64,000 bases of DNA from Auanema rhodensis (taxonomy: Eukaryota > Animalia > Nematoda): assembly GCA_964057225.1 (NCBI GenBank), contig OZ059897.1, forward strand, positions 5,642,001-5,706,000, written 5' to 3'. Shown here one piece after another: positions 13,624 to 46,778 of the stretch. Made by a program: the position numbers and the translations under genes. Position 1 is the stretch's first letter; each line of letters begins with the position of its first letter. The notes under the pieces are model-generated. The model saw only the letters and a list, made by a program, of their open reading frames with translations, was not told the DNA's origin and ran no database searches.

Positions 13624-13840
13624 GCAAAAAATTGAATTTGTATTTGCTTGATATGTGTATATGTGGATATTTAACTCAGCAATTATTGTTCTTTCTAATT
13701 ATAAATAAAATATTATAAAACATTATAGTTAAGATAGTATGAATATAGACAGATATTCCTAAAGTTCGTGTATGTCCCCGAGCAACGTTCGTGTCATGAC
13801 ACCTTACTTCGCACTTCATTCGTATTAATTAAATCTAAAT

Positions 13841-16432
13841 ATATGGCATATTTCACATGACTGGATGTGGTATGTTGATAACCTAAGGATATTGTTGAAT
13901 TGAAGGTGTGAACATGTATTTTCACGGATATATCTTCTCATTCTTGCTTCATCCTCCACATAATCATCTTGTCCATGCTTCTTCTAATTTTCTACTCAAG
14001 TTTCTTCAAAGTTTTACCCAAATTTCTTCATTTTTATGTTAAAATTATTAAGAAACATGATGTATTCTATCATGATTTCACATATAAATCATATAGTTAA
14101 CATATATGATTTGACCGACATAGTACATACAACTTGACTTTTCTATTGTTTTCCTCATCATATGATCATAAAAGATTTTTTCTTTTTCATTATCTTATAT
14201 CCATAAATAGGATTAAACGATTTCCTTTGGCAATTCTATTCTTAATTCCGTTTTCTCTTTGATTTCATGCTTTTTACGGTCTGCCAACAGCATTTTCCCC
14301 TTTATGAGTAGCCGCAAATCTGTCGACCGGCTTAACTCTCATCAGGTCGTCCAACCCATAGTCTACGGAAGCAAATCACTTCTCATCAGTTGTTCCTCTT
14401 GTTCTTCTCTTAAGACCTATGCTTCTTCGTCTTTCTTTCCAAGAAATGTTCATTTGCTTTCAGATGAAAGGCCTTGTTTGGTCCGTCTTCTTTGTATTTT
14501 TCTCAACCATCGTCACAGCTGACGTCAACCCTTTTTCCTATTGTCGTGAAAGAGTCTTCAACAACTTCTGTGATTTGGAATGTGAAGATGAATTCTTACC
14601 GACCGGTGATTGTGATCTTTACAAGCCACCAACTGTAAGTTTGATTTCTTCTTTCATCAAATTCTTACTTTCAATTCAGATTATCCGGGATGTTAACTTG
14701 ACCATAAACAAGCTTCCATTGGTCTTTGCTAGTCGTCAGAGGTTTACTGTAATGCAATGGAGAATTCAGTATAAAGCTCGGATTCATATCTTGAGTGATC
14801 TCACTAAGATCAGTATCCCATCCAATGCTTTTGACAATGGCAAGGTAAAAGCCCATACATTCCACGTGGCTTTACATGATAATCTGGATTTACAGGATTC
14901 ATCTTCATTCCAATTTTGGATTTTGGTTCGTTTCGAGTCAAGGGCTTCAGAGGAAACATCTCCAATTCAAATCAAAGAAGCATTGGAATCCTCGCTAGTA
15001 GAAAGCGATCGTTCAGAATTTGAACGAATGAGAAGAGCCTCGGAAGAACTTCGTCTTCTAGTCGTCGTTTTGTTCCTCACTATGCTTTCAACTCTTGCTG
15101 CTGTTCTCGTTCTTCTCCGTACCAGACGGCGTCGTCCAGTCTGTGCTCCTGTATGGATTCCACCTATGGAGGACGATCTTAAGAGTAAGTTTACAAAGTT
15201 GATTTCAGATTTAATAGAAACGTGATTTCAGAATCTCCAGAATTGTTCACAACTGCTTCTTCTATCACATATCATAAAGCTATTAGCGAATACGATTATC
15301 TTCCTTATGGGTAAGTTCGTTTAAGTTTCTTGTCTATTCCAACTTGGTTAAAACAATTTTTTTGATCAATCTCTTCTTTCAGGGAGAATGGAAATCAGAT
15401 TCAGAGAAGTGGCAAACCTCAGAAACAACTTTCGTAAGTTATCCTTGTGTTTGATCAGCGTTCAATTCTTCTTTCCAGTTACCGGACTCCACAGCTTCTG
15501 GAAGTTCCACAAAGGACCCCTCTTCATTGGCTCGTGGACAACAACAGTAGTGAGATAACTTCGAACGAAAAGCTTCTGAAAATCGAAGAAATGGTTCAAA
15601 ATGGAATTCACATCAATGCTCAGGACGAAGACGAGGAGACTGCTCTCTTCTTGGCTGTTCGCTGCCAACGTCACTTCATGGTTTCTAAGCTTTTGAGTCT
15701 TGGAGCTGATGCTTCTATCATGAATCGTACTAACTCTACCTGTTTACATCAAGCTGCTCACAATATTGACGTGGAAATGATGGAAATTCTTTTGAATCAT
15801 AAGATTCTTCTGAATACAGTAAGCATTTACCAGGATAGTTGAAGAAATAATTTGAATTTCCCTCTAGGTTGTTGATGGTCGTCGTGCTATCGACGCAGTT
15901 GATGATACTGATCGAACTCCTCTTATGGTTTGTGCTGACAATGTGCTCTCCACCAAGCTTGTTCGTATGCTCATTGATGCTGGAGCTGATCCTGCTGATT
16001 CAGGAGATAAGGTTTGTTTCACCCAGTTTAGAGGCTTCTAACTTGATGTTTAATTGTAGGAATCAATCAAGTATACTGGAATGACTGCTCTGCATCATGC
16101 GGCTCAAACTGGCAACTTGCCAATGATCCAAGTTCTTTTGAACATTAGAGCTGTTAAGATCAATTCTTATGATCAACAAGGAGCTACTCCTCTATGGTAT
16201 GCTGTATCCAGTGGTCATTACCATTGTGTTCAAGCTCTTCTTAATGCTGGAGGCGATATGTACTCCCCAGATCACTTGGTTAGTTTTCTCTTCTCCTTCT
16301 TCTTCTTTTTCCTCCTGCTAGATCTTCCTTTTTCAAAAAATTTAATTTTTCTTCTTTTCAGGATCGTTTTCCAATGGACATTGCTAGAAGCAAAAGATTC
16401 ACTGATATAGAAAATATGCTCATCAGACATCA
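13841..16432 (+). repeat. Left arm of a 2.6-kb near-perfect inverted repeat
   Basis: Reverse complement of 23442-26027. Mirrored ORF coordinates sum to a constant 39868 (39874 after a 6-nt indel in the last intron). Confidence 0.97.
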
Positions 16433-16478
16433 GTTTGAAAGCCGTGTAAAGAAGTCTCGTCAACCTGCTGCAGCATAA
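14464..16478 (+). CDS. EGF-less LIN-12/GLP-1 (Notch)-family receptor, copy A, no PEST tail (~524 aa, 9 exons)
   Basis: Exons 14464-14634, 14680-14844, 14896-15184, 15232-15310, 15383-15433, 15479-15818, 15868-16011, 16060-16278, 16362-16478. Domains: signal peptide MKGLVWSVFFVFFSTIVTA; LNR-like CRERVFNNFCDLECEDEFLPTGDC; HD-like region; TM; RTRRRRPVCAPVWIPPME (RAM, cf. VWMPPME of LIN-12/GLP-1); ankyrins RTPLHWL, AQDEDEETALFLAV, CLHQAA, KYTGMTALHHAAQ. Ends KKSRQPAAA*. Confidence 0.9.
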
Positions 16479-17052
16479 TCCGCTTTAACTATGAATAGGT
16501 TCAAATATTTTTTGTACATATTAGAGATTATTTTTATTTTGTTTTCAATTGTTTTTTTAAATGAGAGCTTAACAGAGAATTATAAATATTTATTTGAAAT
16601 GAGCTTAGAGTCATGCACTTTGATTCATTGGAAAATCAGCTGTTACATAGAATACAAGATATAACTTTGACAATTTTCTAGAGAAAACACAAGATGATTT
16701 TGCGAGTTTATATAGTATATATTCGCTTCAGCATCTGAATCTTAACGAATATCTAGGAAGAGAACTTGGTCGACGTACAACCAAAATCTCTCATTCAAAA
16801 GAAAAATAAACATTTAGTGTACTCCTAACACTATATTAAGAGATTATATCTTAATTTTTGATGAAACTCATGAAATTCTTGAAAGAAGACTTCAAGCAGT
16901 TTATGAAAATTTGGGACACTTCAGAAAATACTTTTAAACATGATTTAAAAAATTTTTAAGATTTTTTCTGAATTCATTAGCGTTTTTTAACAACCAAACT
17001 ATATTTTTTCTAAATTTTTGTAGTTTGTCTGAGAAGGTATAAGGATTTTTAG

Positions 17053-17619
17053 TGAGTGTGCAACCTTCATCGCACATGACTGTACGCGCCCAAAATCCTA
17101 AAACAGAGATAGCCTGTTTGAAACTGTTTCTCTCGGCTAAAGACATCGCATACAACCTGAACGACATTATCTTTCTGCGAAAGACAGATGACGTCACTAG
17201 GGGACTCTGATGTGCCCATGTTTTGAGAATGCACGAAGATCGGTAAGTTGTTTGTCATAATTAGCTGTGCCTCTCATCCTCATGAAATGTACCTTGTTTA
17301 GTGATGCGGACGGTCACGAGTTACCGAGAAACGTGTTCAGCTGCAAAAGCTGTAAGACGTAGTTCAACGTTATCATTACCGTGAGTATATTTATTTGTCA
17401 AATGAAGCCAATAAATCCATTTTTCATGTTTAGCCTCTCAATAACCCGATTGACAAGCTGAACAAATCAGCTGATGACATACTGTGCGTTGGTGGACCTG
17501 AAAGCTGCCGTTCTGAATTCCTCAACGCTCGCTGGCTCCAAGATACTATTCGAACTCGGCACTGTCTAGTTTTCAGTATCGTCGAATCAAAGAATAAAAC
17601 TGGCTTTATTCCATTTTGA
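17053..17619 (+). pseudogene. Spliced gene remnant with two in-frame stops inside the insert
   Basis: Good donors (CG|gtaagt ~17243, ACC|gtgagt 17381) and acceptors join three exons into one frame: ...DDVTRGL*CAHVLRMHEDRDADGHELPRNVFSCKSCKT*FNVIITPLNNPIDKL...GFIPF*. Confidence 0.45.
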
Positions 17620-17883
17620 TAAACATTGAAAAAGTTTCTAGTTTTCGTACTTGTATTAAGAATCATAATTTTTCCTTACTGTGACTTTGTTTTTGAACTT
17701 CCGAAAGGTTTATTTTAATGTTGAATAAACTCCACAAGGAATGACTTGTCCCATCTGTTACTTTGACTCAATTTTAGTTTTGAGCTCAATGCTTACAGAA
17801 ATAAAAATTCGATAAAAGCATTTATTTTTGCTATAAAATATATTAGTGAACAATATACCATGTATTATGCATATAACAATATC

Positions 17884-18351
17884 TTACCAATTGTGAAGCT
17901 TTCCCTTAACTGCCAAGCATTGATAATTTCTACGAAAAATCTGATTAATTGCACGGTCGATACGGAGAGAAGTGGTACGAAAACCATCAAGCATGTGATC
18001 AACCTCTTTCCTGTCTGTTATTAATTTTGGATCATGACGACGATGGATTTCTTCAAACTTGAGTTGATAAATGGTACGAATGGCTGGGATTCGCATGTCC
18101 AAGAACGCAATGGCGGGAGGAAAGTTCTTCTCAAAGAATAGCGTGCAATCAAGGCTACGCATTTTACTGCGTTGTTCCCTCAGCTCGTAGTACTCCTGGA
18201 TATTGGTTGCGGCTGCGATTTCCTCTCTGCTGGGCTCCGTATAGTTTGTCCAATTTCCAGGTGGGGCAAAGCCTAACTCAGCACGAAGCTCCTCAAGACC
18301 AATGACAGCTTGTGCCTCTCTCATCAAAATATCATTGAAAATTTCCGCCAT
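17884..18351 (-). CDS. Intronless 155-aa hypothetical helical protein
   Basis: Uninterrupted ORF with protein-like composition (MAEIFNDILMREAQAVIGLEELRAELGF...FFEKNFPPAIAFLD). An intronless ORF of this length is atypical for this window. Confidence 0.65.
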   Translation of the reverse strand: MAEIFNDILMREAQAVIGLEELRAELGFAPPGNWTNYTEPSREEIAAATNIQEYYELREQRSKMRSLDCTLFFEKNFPPAIAFLDMRIPAIRTIYQLKFEEIHRRHDPKLITDRKEVDHMLDGFRTTSLRIDRAINQIFRRNYQCLAVKGKLHNW

Positions 18352-18983
18352 CCTGTGTCAAAATGTCACCCATTTTTATCTTCGCCAACTGTTTGTCCAT
18401 GTCAAAGGCTCAAGATGGAGCGGTCTTCTCTACAAAGGAGATAGAGCTGTCTAGCGAAGAAGCGGTTGATGTAGAGAAGTAAGTAGCATTGTTGGTGCTG
18501 CCTGAAAGATACAAATATCAGCCAAAACATGACCTTTTCATTTATGCAACTATATATTATAACTATAATACCTGCATGTAAATGGGTCGCAAAGCAGAGA
18601 TAAATGGCGACTATTTTCTTCATATGTTCGCCTGAAAAAATTTAGCGTATTTTAATACTTCTTCGCTAGGAATATGAACAATTTTTATTATAGTCGAATG
18701 AAGAAAGAGAGAAGGCGGCATTCGATCGACCTAGTTCTCGCTCACAACCCGACCGACCCAACACTAGACAGACGACGCTAGACTAGACGGTCATGAACAA
18801 AATGAGATTAAAAAAATATTCACTAAAAATTAAATTAAAGTAAAGACAACACAACTTTTTGAAAATCACTAGTTTCAAGCATTTTCAAAACTAGAAGAGA
18901 ACGGAATTAACCACAAATATGTATACCGAATTCTTGTATTTGAAATGTTGAACATTCAATTATCCTATCTACCTTGATTCTTG

Positions 18984-19829
18984 ATTTACCATGACAGTTG
19001 AAGAAATAATTTGAATTTCCCTCTAGGTTGTTGATGGTCGTCGTGCTATCGACGCAGTTGATGATACTGATCGAACTCCTCTTATGGTTTGTGCTGACAA
19101 TGTGCTCTCCACCAAGCTTGTTCATATGCTCATTGATGCTGGAGCTGATCCTGCTGATTCAGGAGATAAGGTTTGTTTCACCCAGTCTAGAGGCTTCTAA
19201 CTTGATGTTTAATTGTAGGAATCAATCAAGTATACTGGAATGACTGCTCTGCATCATGCGGCTCAAACTGGCAACTTGCCAATGATCCAAGTTCTTTTGA
19301 ACATTAGAGCTTTTAAGATCAATTCTTATGATCAACAAGGAGCTACTCCTCTATGGTATGCTGTATCCAGTGGTCATTACCATTGTGTTCAAGCTCTTCT
19401 TAATGCTGGAGGAGATATGTACTCCCCAGATCACTTGGTTAGTTTTCTCTTCTCCTTCTTCTTCTTTTTCCTCCTGCTAGATCTTCCTTTTTCAAAAAAT
19501 TTAATTTTTCTTCTTTTCAGGATCGTTTTCCAATGGACATTGCTAGAAGCAAAAGATTCACTGATATAGAAAATATGCTCATCAGACATCAGTTTGAAAG
19601 CCGTGTAAAGAAGTCTCGTCAACCTGCTGCAGCTTAATCCGCTTTAACTATGAATAGGTTCAAATATTTTTTGTACATATTAGAGATTATTTTTATTTTG
19701 TTTTCAATTGTTTTTTTAAATGAGAGCTTAACAGAGAATTATAAATATTTATTTGAAATGAGCTTAGAGTCATGCACTTTGATTCATTGGAAAATCAGCT
19801 GTTACATAGAATACAAGATATAACTTTGA
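18984..19829 (+). pseudogene. Partial third copy of the Notch-like gene (last three exons + 3' UTR of copy A)
   Basis: Direct repeat of 15825-16670 (offset 3159) with a few substitutions (e.g. R>H, V>F). It has no start codon or 5' exons, but its splice sites are retained. Confidence 0.9.
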
Positions 19830-20657
19830 TAGGAAGGCTTGTAGTTTACTCAAGTGATAAAGATGTTATATGACGATATCTAAGCTAAATAGGAAAAAGC
19901 TTAATATAAGTGATAGAAATAATCAAATTTTATGATCAAATTTGGAAATAGTTTGGTTTCGAATGTTCAAAAAAAGAATGTATTCCTTGACACATCACAT
20001 TTGTATGGAAGTTCAATGTCCACGATATACTATCACACTGTTTGCTCTTCGAACATGCTACCGAACAAATATTTTTATTATGCTTTGTATAAGAATTATA
20101 AAAAACTTTAGAAGAAATTGCAAGAATATAAAAAGAAAATGAAGATAATTTACTATATCATTAAGCATAAAGAACAATCAAAAATTTCTAAATTTCTATA
20201 GAATTCAAGGATAATTAAGTGACTTTTTAAAGAAATTTTAATAAATTCCTATATTATTGCACGAAGAGCTAATAAAATATTCTTATCAGTCATTCAAACT
20301 ATACGTTGAAGCAGAAGGGCAATTGAATATCAGCAGGCTTTTCATCATATTCATTCCCCCTTAATATAAACCTGTGAAAAAAATAAGATAGAAATGTAGA
20401 ATACTGTTAATTATTGTTAGAAATATATATTATATAATACAAAAATAATAAAATAGCATATTTGTATTAAAATAAATATTTTGAATTAATAAAAATCTTC
20501 ATTTTAAAGTAAACATTCTCCATTTAATCTCATCATACGTTCATAAATCTTAACTTGGTTCTTTATTTTTTACTTACTCCTCTTCTTTGATTATATATTT
20601 ATCATATTTTTTTATAATTTGTATAATTATGAATTATTATGCTTTATTTGCTTAAGA

Positions 20658-22527
20658 ATGGGATTTTTGCTGAAGTTGAAGCAATTATCTCTTTTCTTGA
20701 TTCTTGCCGTTGCTGCTAATTTTGATTATGGTTTCTCGTCTACTTATTTAAACAATCCAGTTGAACAATTCGAGGTTTTCTGAATCCCTTATGTTTTTTT
20801 TATTATTTTTTGAAAAGTATTCAGAATTATTTAAATGAATCGTTACGGAGAAGAGGGGATGTTATGACCGATGCGACATATAATTGGATATGGAATTTAA
20901 TTCTTAATATATGGTAAAGTTCATTCAAACATACTTGCTTATTGAAATTTCTTCCAAGGTTTGTTGGATTTTTTGTGGGAATTTGGTTTAGTCCTCTGCT
21001 AAATGATCGCTTCGGTCGTAAAGGTATCTACATTTCATGTCTCTGCTCTTGCTTCATCCAAAAATTTATTTTGAAGTTGGTTATATAGTTGGAAACGGTT
21101 TTGCATTGATAGCAGCTATACTTCGATATCTTGGAGTTATCTTATATATTCCTGAATTATTGTTTACTGGAAGATTCATCTCTTCAATTTGTATGGCTAT
21201 CACCTATCAATCTTGTATTTTATTTCTTCAGGTTTCTCACAATGTCGTTAAATTACATGAAAATATTCAATTTAAGGAATGTTCTCCTACAAATATGAGA
21301 GGATTTATGTCATTTTTATCGGAAATATCATATGCTATTATGTGCTTTGTTGGAGCAATGTTAGGAACTCAACAATTGCTTGGAAATCATCTCTCAATTC
21401 TTGTTCTTGTGCCTGTTCCATTGTGTACGTTTTCATATCAAACTATCCCATATATTTGGATTCGGATGCTTTTACCGGCTTACTGTAGTTTAGGTTTCGT
21501 ATTCTTAATGGTGTTGTTCTTTGTTCATGAAACTCCAAAGTTTCTCTTACTTGTTCGGAAGGATAGAAAAGGAGCTGAGAAATCTGTTATATTCTACCAA
21601 GGACAGAATGCTCCTGTACCGGATATTCTAAATGAAATCATATTAGTTAAACTTCAAATATAATATTAAATGAATATCTATTATTAATTTCAGGAAGCAG
21701 AAAATGAAGAAGAAACACCCGCAGCATTACAAGCTCTCAAAGAAATTCTTACTACACAACATCTTCGAAAAGCTGTATTACTAAGTTGTTGTGCTTTACA
21801 GGTTTGAAAACATAATCACATACTTCAATATTAATTTTTGACTTCAGAACACAATTGCTTTGTGGTCACTACTCCTTTCTTCAACATTTTTCTTGAGACA
21901 AGCTAATGTAAGCACAAGTCTGTCTGCTTGGAGTAGTACAGCTATGATGTTATCTTATGTCGGAGGAACATTACTTGGATCATCATTAATAGAAAGGTAT
22001 TTTTGATCAAAATAATTTCAAAAGAAATGCTCAACTTTGATAGAGTTGGTCGACGAGGATTGTTGCTATTTTTTATTTTTGTCAATAACTTGTTATTGAT
22101 TACTTTTGTTGCTTGTTCACAACTTCAAGTTGTAGCGGATTTCTTGAAATATGGATGTCTTGCTTCACTAATAGGTTATGGATTCACATATGGGTTAGTA
22201 TGAAAAAGAAAAAGTTCATTTTAATAATATATCTTTCTTTATAGCTCAGGAGTAGGTCCAATATCATGGTTCATCTCATCTGAATTAGTGCCACAGCGTT
22301 ACCGTAGCATGACGCAGTCATTCTGTTATGCTGTTAATACCTTATTTGTTGTTATAACAACATTTTCTATATTACCATTATATAATGCTATTGATTCATA
22401 TGCTTTTTTAATTCTTTATACATTGCCAAATATATTTTGTTTTATCTATCTAGTTAAAGAACTTCCGGAGACTCGTGGTCGTGAAATTCATGACATAGTA
22501 GCTGAATTAAGAGGTAAAGTACGTTGA
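20658..22527 (+). CDS. MFS sugar-porter (GLUT-like) transporter (multi-exon)
   Basis: NFDYGFSSTYLN, DRFGRK, LFTGRF, QECSPTNMRG, HETPKFL, ERVGRR, GVGPISWFISSELVPQRYRS, LPETRGR. Lies in the spacer of the inverted repeat. Confidence 0.9.
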
Positions 22528-22873
22528 TCATACTACATAAAGAGAAATATCTATGTCTAAACATATGTACTATGTTATAAATATAATAATATGTATAAGA
22601 AAATTGTATATTTGATTGTTTTTCATTATATTATTAATTGTTATTCGTTTAAAGTTTATTAAATATTATATTATAAAAGAAATACATATTATATACAATC
22701 CGGGATACAACAATAACTTTTAAACATACAAATACATATATGTGTATAATAAACTATAATAAATATCTGAAACATACATTTTTCATAAATAATGATAATA
22801 AAAACAATCAATATGTACAAACTTATAACTTTTTCAACTTCCTCTATTAACTATTTGCATATATCGTATCGTA

Positions 22874-25404
22874 CTAGACGAGATCTTGACAAACCCATTG
22901 ATTATATGATTTTGTTTGAGCATAAAACTGCATATCTTGATATGGAATCAATGGCTTAGGGAAATATGAGCTTGTTTCAGCTTTTCCGTATGTATCGGCA
23001 GGCTTTTGAACTGGTGCATACATGTTTTCCTTATACTCATCGCATGGTGGTGAACTGGCCTGAAAAATATAAAAATAATTAGCATAATACAATGTTTCTT
23101 AGTTCACGTCATTCACGTGGAACGCTGCCCGTTGAACTAAGTCATTTCTATTTTTAACAGATGATGCGATCGGTTGCAATTTTATTTTCAAAACAAAATC
23201 ATTTTTTGCAATTTCAGAACTACATACCCAATATGAAATGCTGTTATTCGATGGTGGCGAATCATAATGACCAATCACACGTGATGAACCAGATGAATTA
23301 GCTGCAAGACGTACAGGTGAACCATCTTCCGAATCTGATGTAACGATAGGCTTTCTCTAGAAAAAAAATATTGAATTTATTCTTCGATCATCGGCTTTTA
23401 CCTTTGCTGGAGGCTGTCTCGATTTCTCTTTCCGCTCCAATTGATGTCTGATGAGCATATTTTCTATATCAGTGAATCTTTTGCTTCTAGCAATGTCCAT
23501 TGGAAAACGATCCTGAAAAGAAGAAAAATAAATTTTTTTGAAAAAAGAAGATCTAGCAGGAGGAAAAAGAAGGAGAAGAGAAAACTAACCAAGTGATCTG
23601 GGGAGTACATATCGCCTCCAGCATTAAGAAGAGCTTGAACACAATGGTAATGACCACTGGATACAGCATACCATAGAGGAGTAGCTCCTTGTTGATCATA
23701 AGAATTGATCTTAACAGCTCTAATGTTCAAAAGAACTTGGATCATTGGCAAGTTGCCAGTTTGAGCCGCATGATGCAGAGCAGTCATTCCAGTATACTTG
23801 ATTGATTCCTACAATTAAACATCAAGTTAGAAGCCTCTAAACTGGGTGAAACAAACCTTATCTCCTGAATCAGCAGGATCAGCTCCAGCATCAATGAGCA
23901 TACGAACAAGCTTGGTGGAGAGCACATTGTCAGCACAAACCATAAGAGGAGTTCGATCAGTATCATCAACTGCGTCGATAGCACGACGACCATCAACAAC
24001 CTAGAGGCAAATTCAAATTATTTCTTCAACTATCCTGGTAAATGCTTACTGTATTCAGAAGAATCTTATGATTCAAAAGAATTTCCATCATTTCCACGTC
24101 AATATTGTGAGCAGCTTGATGTAAACAGGTAGAGTTAGTACGATTCATGATAGAAGCATCAGCTCCAAGACTCAAAAGCTTAGAAACCATGAAGTGACGT
24201 TGGCAGCGAACAGCCAAGAAGAGAGCAGTCTCCTCGTCTTCGTCCTGAGCATTGATGTGAATTCCATTTTGAACCATTTCTTCGATTTTCAGAAGCTTTT
24301 CGTTCGAAGTTATCTCACTACTGTTGTTGTCCACGAGCCAATGAAGAGGGGTCCTTTGTGGAACTTCCAGAAGCTGTGGAGTCCGGTAACTGGAAAGAAG
24401 AATTGAACGCTGATCAAACACAAGGATAACTTACGAAAGTTGTTTCTGAGGTTTGCCACTTCTCTGAATCTGATTTCCATTCTCCCTGAAAGAAGAGATT
24501 GATCAAAAAAATTGTTTTAACCAAGTTGGAATAGACAAGAAACTTAAACGAACTTACCCATAAGGAAGATAATCGTATTCGCTAATAGCTTTATGATATG
24601 TGATAGAAGAAGCAGTTGTGAACAATTCTGGAGATTCTGAAATCACGTTTCTATTAAATCTGAAATCAACTTTGTAAACTTACTCTTAAGATCGTCCTCC
24701 ATAGGTGGAATCCATACAGGAGCACAGACTGGACGACGCCGTCTGGTACGGAGAAGAACGAGAACAGCAGCAAGAGTTGAAAGCATAGTGAGGAACAAAA
24801 CGACGACTAGAAGACGAAGTTCTTCCGAGGCTCTTCTCATTCGTTCAAATTCTGAACGATCGCTTTCTACTAGCGAGGATTCCAATGCTTCTTTGATTTG
24901 AATTGGAGATGTTTCCTCTGAAGCCCTTGACTCGAAACGAACCAAAATCCAAAATTGGAATGAAGATGAATCCTGTAAATCCAGATTATCATGTAAAGCC
25001 ACGTGGAATGTATGGGCTTTTACCTTGCCATTGTCAAAAGCATTGGATGGGATACTGATCTTAGTGAGATCACTCAAGATATGAATCCGAGCTTTATACT
25101 GAATTCTCCATTGCATTACAGTAAACCTCTGACGACTAGCAAAGACCAATGGAAGCTTGTTTATGGTCAAGTTAACATCCCGGATAATCTGAATTGAAAG
25201 TAAGAATTTGATGAAAGAAGAAATCAAACTTACAGTTGGTGGCTTGTAAAGATCACAATCACCGGTCGGTAAGAATTCATCTTCACATTCCAAATCACAG
25301 AAGTTGTTGAAGACTCTTTCACGACAATAGGAAAAAGGGTTGACGTCAGCTGTGACGATGGTTGAGAAAAATACAAAGAAGACGGACCAAACAAGGCCTT
25401 TCAT
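22874..25404 (-). CDS. EGF-less LIN-12/GLP-1 (Notch)-family receptor, copy B, with PEST-like tail (~627 aa, 11 exons)
   Basis: Identical to copy A through ...ENMLIRHQ, then LERKEKSRQPPAK | exon 23228-23356 (RKPIVTSDSEDGSP...YDSPPSNNSISYW) | exon 22874-23059 (ASSPPCDEY...WVCQDLV*). Confidence 0.9.
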
Positions 25405-26027
25405 CTGAAAGCAAATGAACATTTCTTGGAAAGAAAGACGAAGAAGCATAGGTCTTAAGAGAAGAACAAGAGGAACAACTGATGAGAAGTGATTTGCTTC
25501 CGTAGACTATGGGTTGGACGACCTGATGAGAGTTAAGCCGGTCGACAGATTTGCGGCTACTCATAAAGGGGAAAATGCTGTTGGCAGACCGTAAAAAGCA
25601 TGAAATCAAAGAGAAAACGGAATTAAGAATAGAATTGCCAAAGGAAATCGTTTAATCCTATTTATGGATATAAGATAATGAAAAAGAAAAAATCTTTTAT
25701 GATCATATGATGAGGAAAACAATAGAAAAGTCAAGTTGTATGTACTATGTCGGTCAAATCATATATGTTAACTATATGATTTATATGTGAAATCATGATA
25801 GAATACATCATGTTTCTTAATAATTTTAACATAAAAATGAAGAAATTTGGGTAAAACTTTGAAGAAACTTGAGTAGAAAATTAGAAGAAGCATGGACAAG
25901 ATGATTATGTGGAGGATGAAGCAAGAATGAGAAGATATATCCGTGAAAATACATGTTCACACCTTCAATTCAACAATATCCTTAGGTTATCAACATACCA
26001 CATCCAGTCATGTGAAATATGCCATAT
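23442..26027 (-). repeat. Right arm of the 2.6-kb inverted repeat
   Basis: Reverse complement of 13841-16432, including ~620 bp of upstream non-coding DNA. Confidence 0.97.
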
Positions 26028-27361
26028 TTTAAAAAACATATGTTCTAAAATGGTTAATATACTTGTAATACAGGCTGACAGTCATGAATGTAATATTGTT
26101 CAAGTTACAAGATTGATTTAGGTTGAGAAAGTAAGTGTCGATATTTTCACAAGGTCAAGCTCATGGTAATTTATCCAATGAGAACAGGCTGGAGTTAAAA
26201 TAACTTAAATATATTACTTATAGCAATAGTGAGAGAAAACAAAGTAAAGCATTGTTAATTTATAACTATATAATCTGTATTTCAATATATATAAGATGTG
26301 ACGTCATATTTACAATATTGAGAAAATGTGGATAAAGATTACGAGATGGTGTGGTAAAACGAATAAACGATTGGGTCAATCTGTGATTCGATTTCTACGA
26401 AAGTAAGGAAGATGAGAAACAGATGTATTTGACTGCTTGAACTACGTGTGAACAACTAGATTAAAACATTATTTTTAGTGGGTGGACCATTTCATGTAAT
26501 TATACAATCAGTTTTATAGCGTACAGTAAATATTAAGCTGACATGTTCATTTCACGCTTGTCAACTAGAAATTTGCTCATGGCAATGGAATGTGGTAGAC
26601 CGTTTGTCATTAGGTCCCAACGGTAACACATACTATGTTCTGAAGACTATTTTGAGCAATTAACCCAAATGTGTCACCCTTTTGACTTTAATACTCAAGA
26701 ATTTCCGGACATTCTACTGATAGTTTAATAGGAGATTATGTACTAAAGCTTTTGACCTTTGAAATTTAGACAATTTTCATATAATTGGAGCAAAAGATAA
26801 ATATATTTTTTATATCTTAAACACAACTTAATTAAAAAAAAGCAATTTATTGTAAGAAATATAATAAAAATGATGTTCATTTTTAACGTAAAAGAAGCAT
26901 AAAATTAATTATTTATTAATTATATTAAAAAACAAAAATTTAATTTATGTACTATCAGCTTTAGTTCTGAAATCTTAAAAAACATATTTCACAGTTAACA
27001 TATAGTAATATTTAATATAAATAAATCAATATAACTAAATTAAAATAAATTAAAAATTAGTATGTTTCATTACCTTTTATCATAACAATGATCTTAATAT
27101 AAGAGAAATATTATTAAATATTTTTCTTTCTTTCTTCTTAACTTAACTATAAAATATTTTATTTACAATTGTTATTTTTTAATTATGCAACCTAGCGACC
27201 GGTTGCATGCTCTAATCATTATTTTTATTATATTTCAGTTTAATTAACTTCATTTTAATCAAATTTAAACAATAACTTAGGTAATTTACATTTTTTAAAA
27301 TTAAATATTTGAATAATAATTTATACTTAAAAGGTCATCAATTTTTTTTTATATCAATTAG

Positions 27362-35300: not shown

Positions 35301-35397
35301 TTACGTATTTCATAGACACTTATGATTATTGTATAAGATTATGAGGAAAATCTTATATATTAGATATGTGTAACATACATATAAGCTTATCATAAAG

Positions 35398-35438
<41 letters not shown>

Positions 35439-38400
35439 GATATAGCTTTATGATTATAAAATATATTATGAAAAATATGGAAAATCAGCTATGTTCTTCC
35501 AATATTTCTAAGATGTAAGAAATCGGAAGTTACATTCTCATATGATTCGATGAAAATCTGATAAACAATATGAAAACTGATGCTCAGTACTTTTCACTTA
35601 TAGAATGAAGAATCTTTTGAAAGTTTTTCAGAGATGATCGAACTATGTAGTTCGCACTCTCCTTTCTTTCGGACTTCCGTCAGATTGAAATTACGTTTAA
35701 TAATTGGAATAAACTCATGTACAGTACAAATTTTTAAATTTTAAAATTGAATTAATATTATTTGTATTATACAAATACAAAAAATATTCTTAAACATCTT
35801 AAAATCTTAATAATTTTTTGAAAATTAGAAAAATTGAAATTAGATTCTAATGAAGAGAGAGAGAGAGAGAGAAAATGAAGTATCGGTAGGAGAGTTCACA
35901 AGAAAAAAGAAAAGGAAATAAGATTTGTGTGTATGTGTGAGTGTGTCTGTTAGAATCAATAAAGTTTAGAAATTTTCAATTTCAAACAGACGAATAGTTA
36001 AATTAAACGATTTAAATATATTTTTTTATAATAATTATAGTTATAACTTATTGTACGTATAACTAATATACTAAATAATGAATATTCATATGTATATCAT
36101 ATATTATTTTTTTTATAAAATGAAAGAAAATAATGTAAAATGGGCAATAAATTCGATAAAGAATAGAAAGTTGTCTTGGTAACCTATAATATATTTTGCT
36201 TATATCTAACTATGTATGTATATATATTTTTTAAATTTTATATTATTATTTTTTATTATTTTCCACTTTTTTTATGAAGAAACTGATTAATTTCATCAAA
36301 ATATGAAACTTTTTGATTGTAGTAATCCGCTACTATATAGTATAAAATATAATTATATAGTATAGCATAGTATAGTATAGTTAAGTAACTATATAGAAGT
36401 AAATAAAAATGAAAATGTATTAAACAGAAGGAAATAAACAGAAGCATAGTTGTGGTTTGAACTTCTGACTAAGCGTTGTTAGTGGTACTCTATCAATTGA
36501 ATGTCTTGGCAGAGGAACAGAGCTATGTTTGGAAAAGAAAAAGTCTAATATGGAGTACAGATTCTTAATACCTTGATTTGAAAGAAGAAGACGAAGAAGG
36601 AGACGAAAAGATTTAAAAAACAAAAAAAATCAATTAGTAATATGAGTCAAATGCAATGCTAGGATGATAAAGGATCAAAAAAATATGCAAACGAAGGAAA
36701 TTCTTCATGAGTTTCATTTACGGCATTTTGTATTTAATGATGGGAGTAAGGCTAGAAAACGACTGCCCAAGGGAATGACAATCATATACAAACATGAGAG
36801 CATATAGTGGAAATACAAAAAAGCCTTATGAAAATTTTCTTTAAATTTGAAATTTACCTAAATATGCCTTAAGTTTAGAAGAATAAAAAACTTTTGAAAA
36901 AACACATTATGAAATATACAAGGCAAAAAGTACTTTAGGCCAAAAAACAGAATACATAAAGTAGAAAAGAGTTTCAAACGTCAACAACCATCAACCGTTC
37001 GTTATGTCCGCTAGCACATTTGATAGAGAATAATTGCAATACGTGTTAGTTCTAATGATGTCATCATTTCACGTATGCTAATTGCAACCCAATGACTGAA
37101 TTCACGTATGCATGTTGATTACGTGGATTAGGTCAAGAATTTAAAATGAAATTGATGAATTTAAAATTAATAGAAAAATAGAAAATAAATAATTTTAAAA
37201 AATAGTTGTGATTGCTTATAGATGATTTATTACTAATCGACAACTTATGGCTGGTATTATCAATTAATAAAAACTAAAAGATGAAATATGAAGGATGTGA
37301 TTTAGCCATGTTATAATGAGTGATGTTGCTGTGTGCAGGCCGAATAAGGTTTCATCTATATTACTTCTATCTCATTCTACTCTCTGTTGCAAGAATTTGT
37401 CTTTACTCTCTTTCACTCTCTCTCTCTCTCTCTCCCTCTCCTAGTTTTTTCTGTTTCTCTCTCTGTCGTACACACAGTCTGAACTTGTTGGATATGCTGC
37501 TGAACAACAGAAAGTGTTTTTTAGGTTCTACTCTTCACAATATTTAATTCTATAACTAGGGTAGTAGTAAGCGAGCTATGCTCTCATTCTCTTATCTGCA
37601 TATTCTCTATTGTTCACTTACGTTACTTGTAAACCCTCATCATATAGATATTTCAACTTTCTGCCATAATTGGACTGATTTTTGCTTTTTCGGTTTTTTT
37701 GCTGTACTTTAGCAGCTTTAGTTATATGAACTTATTAGGATTGAACTTTCAGCATAGAATTCTCTCTTTCTCTCTCTGTTTTACTCTGTTTCTCTCTCTC
37801 TTTCATGGAATATTATGAAAAAAAAAGTTTTATAGGAGAAATAAATTGTTTGTCTGAAAGAGCAATAAAACAATAAATTAGAAACAGATATCTCAACAAC
37901 TCATTTAGCTGTTAGGGCATCAACAGCACTTAGTCTAATCAAGTACTGTTTTGACGTAACGAGTGGAAGTCGTTTCATAAATTTGGGCATCTGAGGCCGA
38001 TCAGTTCAGCAATGCACATTGGTAGAATGGGTGAGCCAGAAAAGGAAAAAAGAAGAAAGAAATTCCAGCTAGATGAATGAAGCTGATAGAAATTGGGAGC
38101 AAAGCCTGAATCTATAGTGCATTCAGTTCTGAATGAAAGTTCTAAAATTAAAATGAACTGTCGAACTATTTTTAAACCAATTGTAACCTTCTCAAGTTAT
38201 TGAGACATCTGGAATGTTACAACATGTATTTAACACAGGAAATAAATCTCAAAAAGTCACAGCATTAAGTTTATCTTGATTTCCTACACTCCATCTCATG
38301 CTTGTGCTCATTGTCTCTTTGTGCTCTCACTCTCACATTCTCTCACTTTCCTCGTCTTCATTTGCTCTCCATACATTAAATCTTTATAAGTTTTGAATAA

Positions 38401-43229: not shown

Positions 43230-45525
43230 ATATAGTTAGTATTACGATATTGTATTAATAGTACATGAACATCGCTACTTAAAAGACATGTAAGTTAATG
43301 CTGTCAGCTGTTCCTCCATCTATTCTCGTCCTCATCCCCCTCCTCCTCCTCCTTGTTTTACGTTTGACCAAAACCTCCAACCTACTGCGTTGAATTTTAT
43401 ATGAGACAGATAATTTTTTTTTCAAACAGAATATATTAGTAAATGATTAGTATTTCAGTTTAAAATATCAATTTTACATTTATAAAAGCATAATGTTATC
43501 ACGTAATATGACTGACTATAAGCTGAAAATTATAGATTATAAACTAACTTTTCATAATAAGTTGATAGACAGACAGGCTGGACTATTCAACAACTTTCAT
43601 CCTTTTTCTCACTCCCGCCTCTTTTTTCCAACAAGTAATAGAAAAAAACAGATAGAACTTTGAATACTATGTGAGTACTAATATCAATTGATGTCTGGTT
43701 AAAGGAAACGGGCAAATGTCTTCGAAAAATAAAATCTATTATTAGAATTTTTGTGAATTATATGAGGTTGCAGCTAGACTGAACATGAATTCAATCTGTC
43801 GAAGATTTGAAGAAAACGAGATTTACGCTAAACACAAAGCATTAACCCTACAAGAAGAAAAATACAATTTTGTTTGAAAAAAAAAGCAAAAAAAAGGTTT
43901 TTAAGACGAGGAAGAGAAGAACATATCTAAAAGATAGAAGAAACAGATAGGAATATGGTTAGAAGACCTTGATAGTGCTGGAAACCAAAAAGGTTTGCTT
44001 TTCGCTTGGCTATTCTGTTTCCTTCATTTCATTGTTAATTTCTTCTGTTGTTTTGTTAAGATTAAGAGAGAAATAAGAGTGAAAAATACGGGATTATCAT
44101 ATAATTGAAGTCAATTATCTAATTATATCAATTCGTTGTGGAAAATGAGAGACGAGAGTATAAAAAAAGTATATGAAGCTTTATCTATATATGATATAGC
44201 CAATAGTGCAATATAGAGTATTCATTAAAACTTTAACAGCTTGAACAATCTTAAATTCTTACTAAATTGTATTAAATCTACAGAATACAAATTGAATTAT
44301 GAATACAATCCATTGAATTTCTTTCCTTTCAATCCTCTCACCATTTAGCATTTGGAGAATTATTATCATTGCAATCTTAGCTAATTATATTCGTATACTG
44401 AAATGTATCCAGATTTGTATTTGTTTTCAAGAAAATTTAACTTATTTCTGATAAATTGTTCCAAAAATGTATGAAAATGAAGCTATTTATTGATATTTAA
44501 CGAACTATGTATGAAAACCTTTTTTTGTCATTTTCTTGTACTTTGCACACACACACATACACACACTCACACATACACATGTTTACTATATCTAAATGAC
44601 AAAATAACAATTAGAAAATGCTTAAGAAAGTCCGTACATATCATTAATTGAATATTTATTATATAATATATATATATATGAAAAGAATAATATTCAATTA
44701 ATTCTCTTATAAGGTTTGAAGTTTTTAAAAGGAGGAGGTTGGCGGTAGATGAGCATGTAAAATTCAAATGACAACGACACAAACAAATGCTTCAAGCAAT
44801 TGATGAACGGAGTCAAAAAACATTTGGAAAACACACAAAATTGAGTATGATGGTTTAGAAAGCAAGAGGACACAAGCACGCTATATAGCGAAGTAACTAT
44901 TATGACACGAAAAGGATGTGAATAGAGAGGGAAACTTGACTTGATATCAAGATAGGGAGCATAGTCTGGATACTCCTGATCATATGTGTCTCCTGATATG
45001 GATAAAAATTATTCAGTTTGTTCTTTTCTTCTTTTTCATTATCATATTCTCATATTTGGAATGAAAATTTGAAACAGCATGACTGACGTATGCGTGTTAG
45101 TTGAAGACAATTATGGAAATTGAGACTAAATGCTGTAAGAGTCCAGGTGATAAGCGGTATAAGCTATGCTGATATGGCGATCATATGGACTCCATAAGAT
45201 ATTTCATTGAATATATACTCCAAAACTTAAATAAAGAGAAAAAAAACTTTTCATTTTAATTCGATTGTTAGGAAGCTTATTCAGATTTCTATTGCGAGCT
45301 CGGTATTACATGATATATTGTGATTGTACATATATGATATAAACTATATAATTTCGTAAATTTATATTATTTAAATGAAAAATAATACTCAAAATTTGAA
45401 AATATGAACCTATGAGTTATTGATGTTATATAAGCAAAAGTATAAAACCTTCAACAGGAAGATGCAATGAAAACATATGCATTCACTATGTAAATATTAT
45501 ATTTTTCTTGAAACTTATCATATTT

Positions 45526-45528
<3 letters not shown>

Positions 45529-45594
<66 letters not shown>
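45529..45594. repeat. (TA)~33 microsatellite
   Basis: Uninterrupted TA run. Confidence 0.95.
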
Positions 45595-45601
<7 letters not shown>

Positions 45602-46778
45602 TTATTTCTAAATTTTTGTATTCTGATCTACTATGATTCATGATATTTTAGAAGAGTTTCGTGTAAACTCTGAATTTATAGACAAAGTACAAAGAAAAAC
45701 TTTTTTTATTGGATTTGAAGTAGAAGTGTTGAACTTAAAAAATCAGAAAACTAAAAACATTTCAAACTATAAATCATCATAAAACTATGTGTGATTACAA
45801 ATAAAAATATATAATATGTGAATCCAAATCAATATCTACAGTTCATATTCATATCCAACAATTTTTATTTTAAATAAATGAAGATCATAATTAGTATATT
45901 TTAGTTTTTGTCTAATTATTCTTTCTCTATACTTCACTAATTGACTTTTCAAAATCTTTTATTTTTTGAAATAACATATGGGGTCAGTAGTGCCACTGCG
46001 AGCAAGAACTCGTATAATGCAACCGCGTCCAGCGAAGTAAAACGTTAAAATGAAAATTAATTGAAGACTAATGGTAAAGTGAAAATTAAAATGACGTAAT
46101 ATGGTTTTTCAGGGTTAGTTCATAACTTAAACGAATGAACAGATAGAATGGACTAAAGGGTGGGGATGGTGGATAAAGATAAAGATATAATTCTTAAAAA
46201 CCTAGCATAGGATATACATACATCTCGCTTGATGAATTATCATGCTATATAGACGTTTTGGGAGTTAGGATTTTGAATTTGGCAATAGAGAACAACGAAA
46301 AATGGAAAAACATCCAATGGTGAACGATTTTTAAAGTATCTCGGGAGCAATAGCACGTGAGAAATGAATTCAAGTTTTCGGTAAGAGCAACTTTTTGTAT
46401 AAATAAAGTTAATTAAGAGAGAAAATAGAATGATAGGAAAAGAAAACAACAAAGAAAGAGAGAGAGAGAGTGAAAGAGAGCTGTAGAGATGATTGTGTAG
46501 AGTAGTGCTTTTGTTTTCGAGTATTCCAGTAATAATTGTCAAACTGCTGAGACCCTTTTGCCGTTTTCTTCAGTGAATCAGTTATTCGGTTCAGTTCTTT
46601 TGATGAAAAATTAAAAGCTAATCCAACCACTTGATTCCTTTTCTGCATAATTTATAAGAAAAGTTTGATCTTTAGTTGATTCGTTTAAATATGATAATAT
46701 GATATTTGAAAAAGGATAAAAATTAAAGAAAATATTAACACTATATTCTACCATTTATTATTATGCCACTTCATGAAA

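Follow-up and report, generated by a model that had tools for sequence, protein, structure and literature searches.

A 64,000-nucleotide stretch of the genome of the nematode Auanema rhodensis (contig OZ059897.1, positions 5,642,001 to 5,706,000, hereafter the window) carries two inverted copies, A and B, of a gene that is predicted to encode a LIN-12/Notch-type receptor without EGF repeats. The copies share their body and differ at the carboxy terminus, where copy A ends shortly after the ankyrin repeats and copy B continues into two further exons. The original prediction had viewed the pair as the source of one stable and one unstable intracellular domain, both driven by the same promoter sequence. 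From the analysis presented here, copy A is best explained (with a probability of approximately 0.55) as a truncated copy whose reading frame has stayed intact as a by-product of gene conversion from copy B and which yields little or no mRNA in the material sampled. It is probably not a stable isoform on an equal footing with copy B.

Two inverted copies with one body and two carboxy termini

The DNA of the window is AT-rich with short GT..AG introns. A self-comparison identified three related pieces: the two arms of an inverted repeat, A and B, and a shorter fragment, A′ (Table 1). When 13836-16438 was compared to 26031-23436 with blastn, the arms of approximately 2.6 kb were 99.5% identical, and over 13838-16305 there is a single difference in 2468 nt. 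Identity extends upstream for 583 bp before the first ATG (13836-14418), after which the distal flanks differ; residual homology beyond this 5′ border of the arms was looked for and none was found. The suggestion that one promoter sequence serves both copies is consequently borne out for the proximal 583 bp and not for the distal flanks.

Exon models were built for both full copies and checked for GT..AG introns, an open frame and a single stop. The first 557 residues of the two proteins are identical, through ENMLIRHQ. Copy A then reads FESRVKKSRQPAAA and stops at a TAA (16476-16478). Copy B reads LERKEKSRQPPAK, is interrupted by a splice donor (GTAAAA at 23401), and continues into two exons of 43 and 61 aa that complete a 117-residue tail. 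In the alignment, the TAA of copy A falls on the TAA within the donor GTAAAA of copy B. These models agree with what had been read from the letters, namely an identical body, a stop in copy A where copy B has a donor, and approximately 104 aa of additional coding sequence in copy B, with both of its junctions seen in RNA contigs. The motif string that had been named in the additional exons is also present, with YDSPPSNNSISYW and ASSPP straddling the junction of the two. The description of these exons as Ser/Pro-rich suits the first of them; the second is richer in Tyr and Pro.

The second ATG (14464) is the likely start codon of copy A, since a related contig described below has no upstream in-frame ATG before the corresponding MK... 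sequence. Two alternative readings of the 3′ ends were considered and set aside. A second donor in copy A (CGT followed by GTAAAG, at 16446) leads to no plausible downstream exon and has no RNA support, although 16480-17849 lay outside the RNA alignment. Retention of intron 7 in copy B would give a product ending in PPAKVKADDRRINSIFFF followed by a stop, and none was seen among the RNA contigs.

A receptor of the LIN-12/Notch type without EGF repeats

The shared body is predicted to comprise a signal peptide, a very short ectodomain, a transmembrane segment, a RAM region and an ankyrin (ANK) domain, as would be expected of a LIN-12/Notch-type receptor that lacks EGF repeats. The RAM motif, a tryptophan between hydrophobic residues followed by proline, is present just inside the predicted membrane span (RTRRRRPVCAPVWIPPMEDDLKS). 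The stretch RTRRRRPVCAPVWIPPMEDD aligns to the LIN-12 RAM peptide of 3brd_D (E 4.8e-4), which was crystallised with its DNA-binding partner, and RTRRRRPVCAPVWIPPMEDDLKS also aligns to 2fo1_E (E 0.022). Exons 4 and 6 match Pfam Ank_2, Ank and Ank_3 with E values of 1e-15 to 1e-16, and the best natural single-stretch match of exon 4 is the ANK domain of LIN-12 (2fo1_E, E 2.6e-20 over 100 residues). The last ankyrin repeat, DRFPMDIARSKRFTDIENMLIRHQ, is degenerate, and the point at which A and B diverge would directly follow its second helix.

In exon 1 (268 aa), no EGF match was found in Pfam, nor was there a match to LNR, NOD or NODP at E <= 0.1. A Cys-rich stretch, CRERVFNNFCDLECEDEFLPTGDCD, resembles one LNR by eye only. 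With just 583 bp of repeat arm ahead of the ATG, there can be no shared upstream exons to supply EGF repeats. The last shared exon had no match in the PDB, and the copy B tail exons matched no family in Pfam. A search of exon 1 against 1.84 billion representatives returned an open reading frame (ORF) from a Logan contig of a related species (ORF P0001 of contig L001) and P0002, a low-complexity false match that was rejected as a relative; no annotated full-length relatives were among the results. Word searches with exon 1 and with the ORFs around exon 6 and around tail exon 2 of copy B gave P0001 or nothing, by a method that cannot detect full-length relatives from a single exon.

Age of the tails and of the bodies

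In a three-way alignment of A, A′ and B, there is one difference between A and B from 13838 up to the last intron. Within that intron (16296-16345) A and A′ are the same, and B is set apart by a slippage indel of 6 bp together with three homopolymer changes. The 88 nt that follow (16346-16433) are identical in all three. From 16434 onward, A and A′ differ from B at approximately 41% of sites (approximately 59% identity). At the 3′ border of the tract, the difference thus rises from 0.04% to approximately 41% within one exon while homology is still significant.

The short tails of A and B are old homologues. They share 8 of 12 aligned residues, and different codons are used for 6 of those 8. 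The tail alignment score of 29 may be compared to a null mean of 4.6 (standard deviation 3.6; p about 4e-5) from all 14-mers without a stop in the remainder of the window, the copies being excluded (47,035 in number), among which one other locus reaches 29. Beyond the stop of copy A, approximately 60 nt still align with intron 7 of copy B, as far as its poly-T tract and acceptor. From the tail homology, the codon differences and the resemblance to intron 7, a recent duplication breakpoint at this position is therefore excluded. Across 13 aligned tail codons there are approximately 9 synonymous and 7 non-synonymous differences. A tblastn search of the whole window, including the sequence downstream of A and A′, recovered no relics of the copy B tail exons.

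An outside reference for these figures is provided by L001, a 1368-nt genomic Logan contig (SRR31646600) that is 84% identical to 14390-15749 and has the same exon-intron layout. It is the only outside relative that was found and it ends before the tails. Between L001 and the A. rhodensis gene, 38% of fourfold-degenerate sites are different (62% identity) and neutral sites differ by 21-38%. Because the tail DNA is approximately 41% different, the two tails separated no later than roughly the time at which the L001 species split off. Taken together, near-identical arms and an old tail homology point to an old inverted duplication, in which gene conversion would have preserved the likeness of the bodies as far as the tail, rather than to a fresh copy. 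As a separate observation, the introns of L001 (79-84% identity) are more alike than the fourfold-degenerate sites, which is unusual.

Fragment A′ is 99.2% identical to positions 15825-16670 of copy A and shares with it the A-type tail and the 3′ flank, including 192 nt past the stop. It has seven private differences that are evenly spread along its length. Its first position, 18984, corresponds to 15825 and so falls within intron 4 (15819-15867). Since A′ starts inside an intron, it is a DNA-level copy of the 3′ end of copy A. It is situated between two divergently transcribed genes.

Representation of the two tails in RNA

The RNA evidence comes from four small runs of one study, used as Logan contigs and labelled 'RNA?'. 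The contigs were aligned to 17850-23849, which holds the copy B tail and also A′ as a stand-in for the A tail (99.2% alike). That the runs contain spliced RNA is evident from ten GT..AG joints in a neighbouring sugar-transporter gene. Both joints of the copy B tail (23402 to 23356 and 23227 to 23058) are present in runs X1, X2 and X4. A single X1 contig of 1105 nt spans exons 4 to 9 and extends to 22838, 36 nt beyond the stop. The junctions of exon 4 with exon 5 and of exon 5 with exon 6 are likewise present in RNA contigs.

The point at which A and B diverge was crossed as B-type by contigs of three runs. A-type tail contigs were found in none of the four, and in each of them the depth is 0 over 19450-19849, which covers the terminal exon common to A and A′ together with its flank. 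The contigs carry the letter of A and B at 19124 and 19312, and not the private letter of A′, which was itself not seen as RNA. In the sampled material, A-type mRNA accounts for no more than a minor fraction. For the transcripts of copy A, on which the idea of two isoforms depends, the outcome leans toward absence, with contigs too shallow for proof.

Sequence character of the copy B tail

A Cdc4-phosphodegron has the core (T/S)PPX(T/S/D/E) after hydrophobic residues (PMC7281081). This core occurs once in the copy B tail, in tail exon 2, where YWAS precedes SPPCD; a chance match within a 104-aa stretch rich in Ser and Pro was estimated by us at roughly 5% and is not rare. DSPPSN does not fit the core, having Asn at +4. 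With an approximate PESTfind-like script, for which the usual cut-off is +5, PIVTSDSEDGSPV scored 4.76 and the junction-spanning YDSPPSNNSISYWASSPPCDEY (YDSPP...CDEY) scored 2.09. As judged by its composition and one motif, the tail could plausibly act in turnover or regulation, and the label 'PEST' fits it weakly. Of the phosphodegron that had been proposed for the tail, one core match is left standing; the scores below +5, the lack of a Pfam family and the failure of DSPPSNN at +4 do not bear it out.

Weighing of the explanations

The reading of copy A as a truncated copy may be laid out as a series of steps. A LIN-12/Notch-type receptor gene without EGF repeats would have undergone an inverted duplication long ago, followed by the loss of the donor and tail exons from copy A, leaving a stop on the former donor and a frame that ends 14 residues past the ANK domain. 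Ongoing gene conversion between the arms would then homogenise the bodies and 583 bp upstream until homology fails, so that the conversion tract would terminate within the last shared exon, immediately behind the final ankyrin repeat. Copy B would have retained the donor and two tail exons, and with them the 674-aa protein form seen in RNA. At a later time, an 846-bp piece of the 3′ end of copy A may have been copied 3.2 kb downstream to give the dead fragment A′. A stop on a lost donor has the usual look of a truncating lesion, and the open frame of copy A is maintained by conversion whether or not copy A is used.

Several points weigh against this reading. Contigs drop rare variants and the word depth of copy B is only 3-6, so the absence of A-type contigs is weak evidence. 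The assembler behind Logan clips low-coverage side branches under about 300 nt, and an A tail at less than approximately one-third to one-half of the depth of B would drop out or be trimmed as a tip. The four runs stem from a single study of unspecified stage. Copy A shares the proximal 583 bp and all introns with copy B, so some transcription would be expected. The truncated copy has also persisted for about as long as the L001 species split, a long survival for a gene of no use, given that the genome is compact. The 13 tail codons of copy A, a tiny sample, hint at constraint for part of their history. Lastly, the tail comparison rests on one species, given that L001 stops short of that region.

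In a model built on the original prediction, the shared promoter would drive expression of A and B alike, the intracellular domain of A would be long-lived because it lacks a degron, that of B would be short-lived through a PEST/Cdc4-phosphodegron, and the tails would be kept apart by selection and the bodies alike by conversion. An open frame in copy A that ends cleanly after RAM and ANK would suit this proposal, since LIN-12(intra deltaP) is built in the same way (PMC5100865). So would the age of the tail difference, a conversion tract that stops exactly at the tail, the hint of constraint on the 13 codons, the SPPCD match to the degron core (PMC7281081), the identical proximal promoter and the long persistence of copy A. 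However, contigs of three runs pass the branch point as B-type and no A-type tail contig appears in any of the four, the stop resembles a lesion, conversion would hold the frame open regardless of use, and the copy B tail scores below the PEST threshold and is without a family match. The proposal is thus partly supported: its structural half holds, the functional half was not supported by the tests that were feasible, and as a whole it is considered unlikely.

One version of this proposal, and a slightly more doubtful one, is a maintained two-output system. Conversion would unify the body and proximal promoter, selection would protect two carboxy termini (a bare RAM-ANK form and one with a degron tail), and copy A would be expressed in another stage or tissue. 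If the identical inverted arms were to recombine by crossing-over, the 7-kb spacer could be inverted and the tails thereby exchanged between distal contexts; in a two-output system, such a flip could change the pairing of the distal flanks with the tails that they drive.

A recent inverted duplication of the 5′ 2.6 kb of copy B into unrelated DNA, with the frame running on for 14 codons by chance, would account for the near identity of the arms. It is very improbable when the 14 codons are homologous to the end of the copy B exon (p about 4e-5) with near-saturated synonymous change, the homology carries on into an intron relic, and A′ shows that the A-type end is older than 0.8% divergence. 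An assembly artefact in the form of a falsely duplicated or chimeric arm deserves equally little credence: fold-back errors can create identical inverted arms, but here they are separated by 7 kb of unique DNA in which two genes are expressed, copy A has its own diverged tail and flank, and A′ (0.8% divergence) independently carries the A-type end.

Other features of the locus

The coordinates of the features are collected in Table 1. The spacer between the inverted arms is 7 kb in length and has two expressed genes inside it, one of which converges on the 3′ end of copy A. Elsewhere in the window, short simple-repeat blocks at 35383-35479 and 45511-45605 match each other on both strands with 83-97% identity.

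Table 1. Features of the inverted repeat and its surroundings, in window coordinates.
Feature	Position	Strand	Description
Arm A of inverted repeat	13836-16438	+	583 bp of 5′ flank and copy A through codon Q557; blastn, self-comparison
Copy A coding region	14419-16478	+	Seven exons, 571 aa (556 from ATG 14464); introns all GT..AG, single stop
Copy A exons	14419-15184, 15232-15310, 15383-15433, 15479-15818, 15868-16011, 16060-16278, 16362-16478	+	
A-type tail	16434-16478	+	FESRVKKSRQPAAA (14 aa) and TAA; no splice donor; old homologue of the 3′ end of copy B exon 7
A-type 3′ flank	16479-16670	+	Common only to A and A′; first ~60 nt still resemble copy B intron 7
Expressed gene, no Pfam match	17884-18655	-	155-aa ORF at 17884-18351; run X3 contig 18315-18500 joined to 18571
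Fragment A′	18984-19829	+	846 bp: part of intron 4, exons 5 and 6, A-type terminal exon, flank; no 5′ exons
Sugar-transporter gene (MFS, Pfam Sugar_tr)	20659-22562	+	Multi-exon, in spacer; fully spliced in 4/4 RNA runs, 10 GT..AG introns of 45-69 nt
Copy B coding region	22874-25449	-	Nine exons, 674 aa (659 from second ATG)
Copy B exons	25449-24684, 24636-24558, 24485-24435, 24389-24050, 24000-23857, 23808-23590, 23512-23402, 23356-23228, 23059-22874	-	
Copy B tail exon 2	22874-23059	-	61 aa and stop; 7 Tyr, 7 Pro, 5 Ser; SPPCD match at 23039-23053
Copy B tail exon 1	23228-23356	-	43 aa, 11 Ser, 4 Pro; PEST-like stretch PIVTSDSEDGSPV at 23312-23350
Copy B last shared exon	23402-23512	-	37 aa; departs from A after 23441
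Arm B of inverted repeat (copy B body)	23436-26031	-	blastn, self-comparison

Comparison with known systems

The intracellular domain of LIN-12 and GLP-1 in C. elegans is ordered as RAM, ANK, PEST and a carboxy terminus. Copy B is alike in its RAM region (E 4.8e-4 to 3brd_D), its ANK domain and a Ser/Pro-rich carboxy terminal extension with a (S)PPx(D) core. In contrast to LIN-12 and GLP-1, it has no EGF repeats and no LNR/NOD match in Pfam, no family similarity could be detected in its tail, and no S4-type run of serines follows the motif. An analogy between the copy B tail and a PEST region would be reasonable in form.

For copy A, the closest parallels are truncated receptors. In C. elegans, LIN-12(intra) without its PEST region and carboxy terminus is stable and constitutively active, and RAM and ANK suffice for target activation (PMC5100865). 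An architecture of RAM and ANK only is stable and constitutively active, whether engineered in C. elegans or arising by truncation in human leukaemia (PMC5100865, PMC7281081). LIN-12(intra deltaP) and the PEST-truncating NOTCH1 alleles of T-cell acute lymphoblastic leukaemia both resemble the RAM and ANK with nothing behind them that are predicted for copy A (PMC5100865, PMC7281081). Those forms are engineered or somatic truncations of EGF-bearing receptors, whereas copy A is a germline-encoded, EGF-less paralogue that was not seen in RNA contigs.

Should copy A be used, it would represent a natural counterpart, encoded in the germline, of the PEST-deletion alleles that render Notch hyperactive, in a receptor without the ligand-binding EGF arm, and the locus would offer a compact system for asking how far the lifetime of the intracellular domain sets the strength of Notch signalling. 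If copy A is silent, the locus would be a clean case of conversion preserving the reading frame of a truncated duplicate, and a caution against equating 'open frame' with 'functional' in near-identical paralogues.

Inverted gene duplicates that are homogenised by conversion include nematode heat-shock gene pairs and the palindromes of Y chromosomes. Like these, the present arms are near-identical, have sharp edges and show a much older divergence outside. They differ in that the edge is found inside the coding region, with the result that the two copies share a body and differ in their carboxy terminus.

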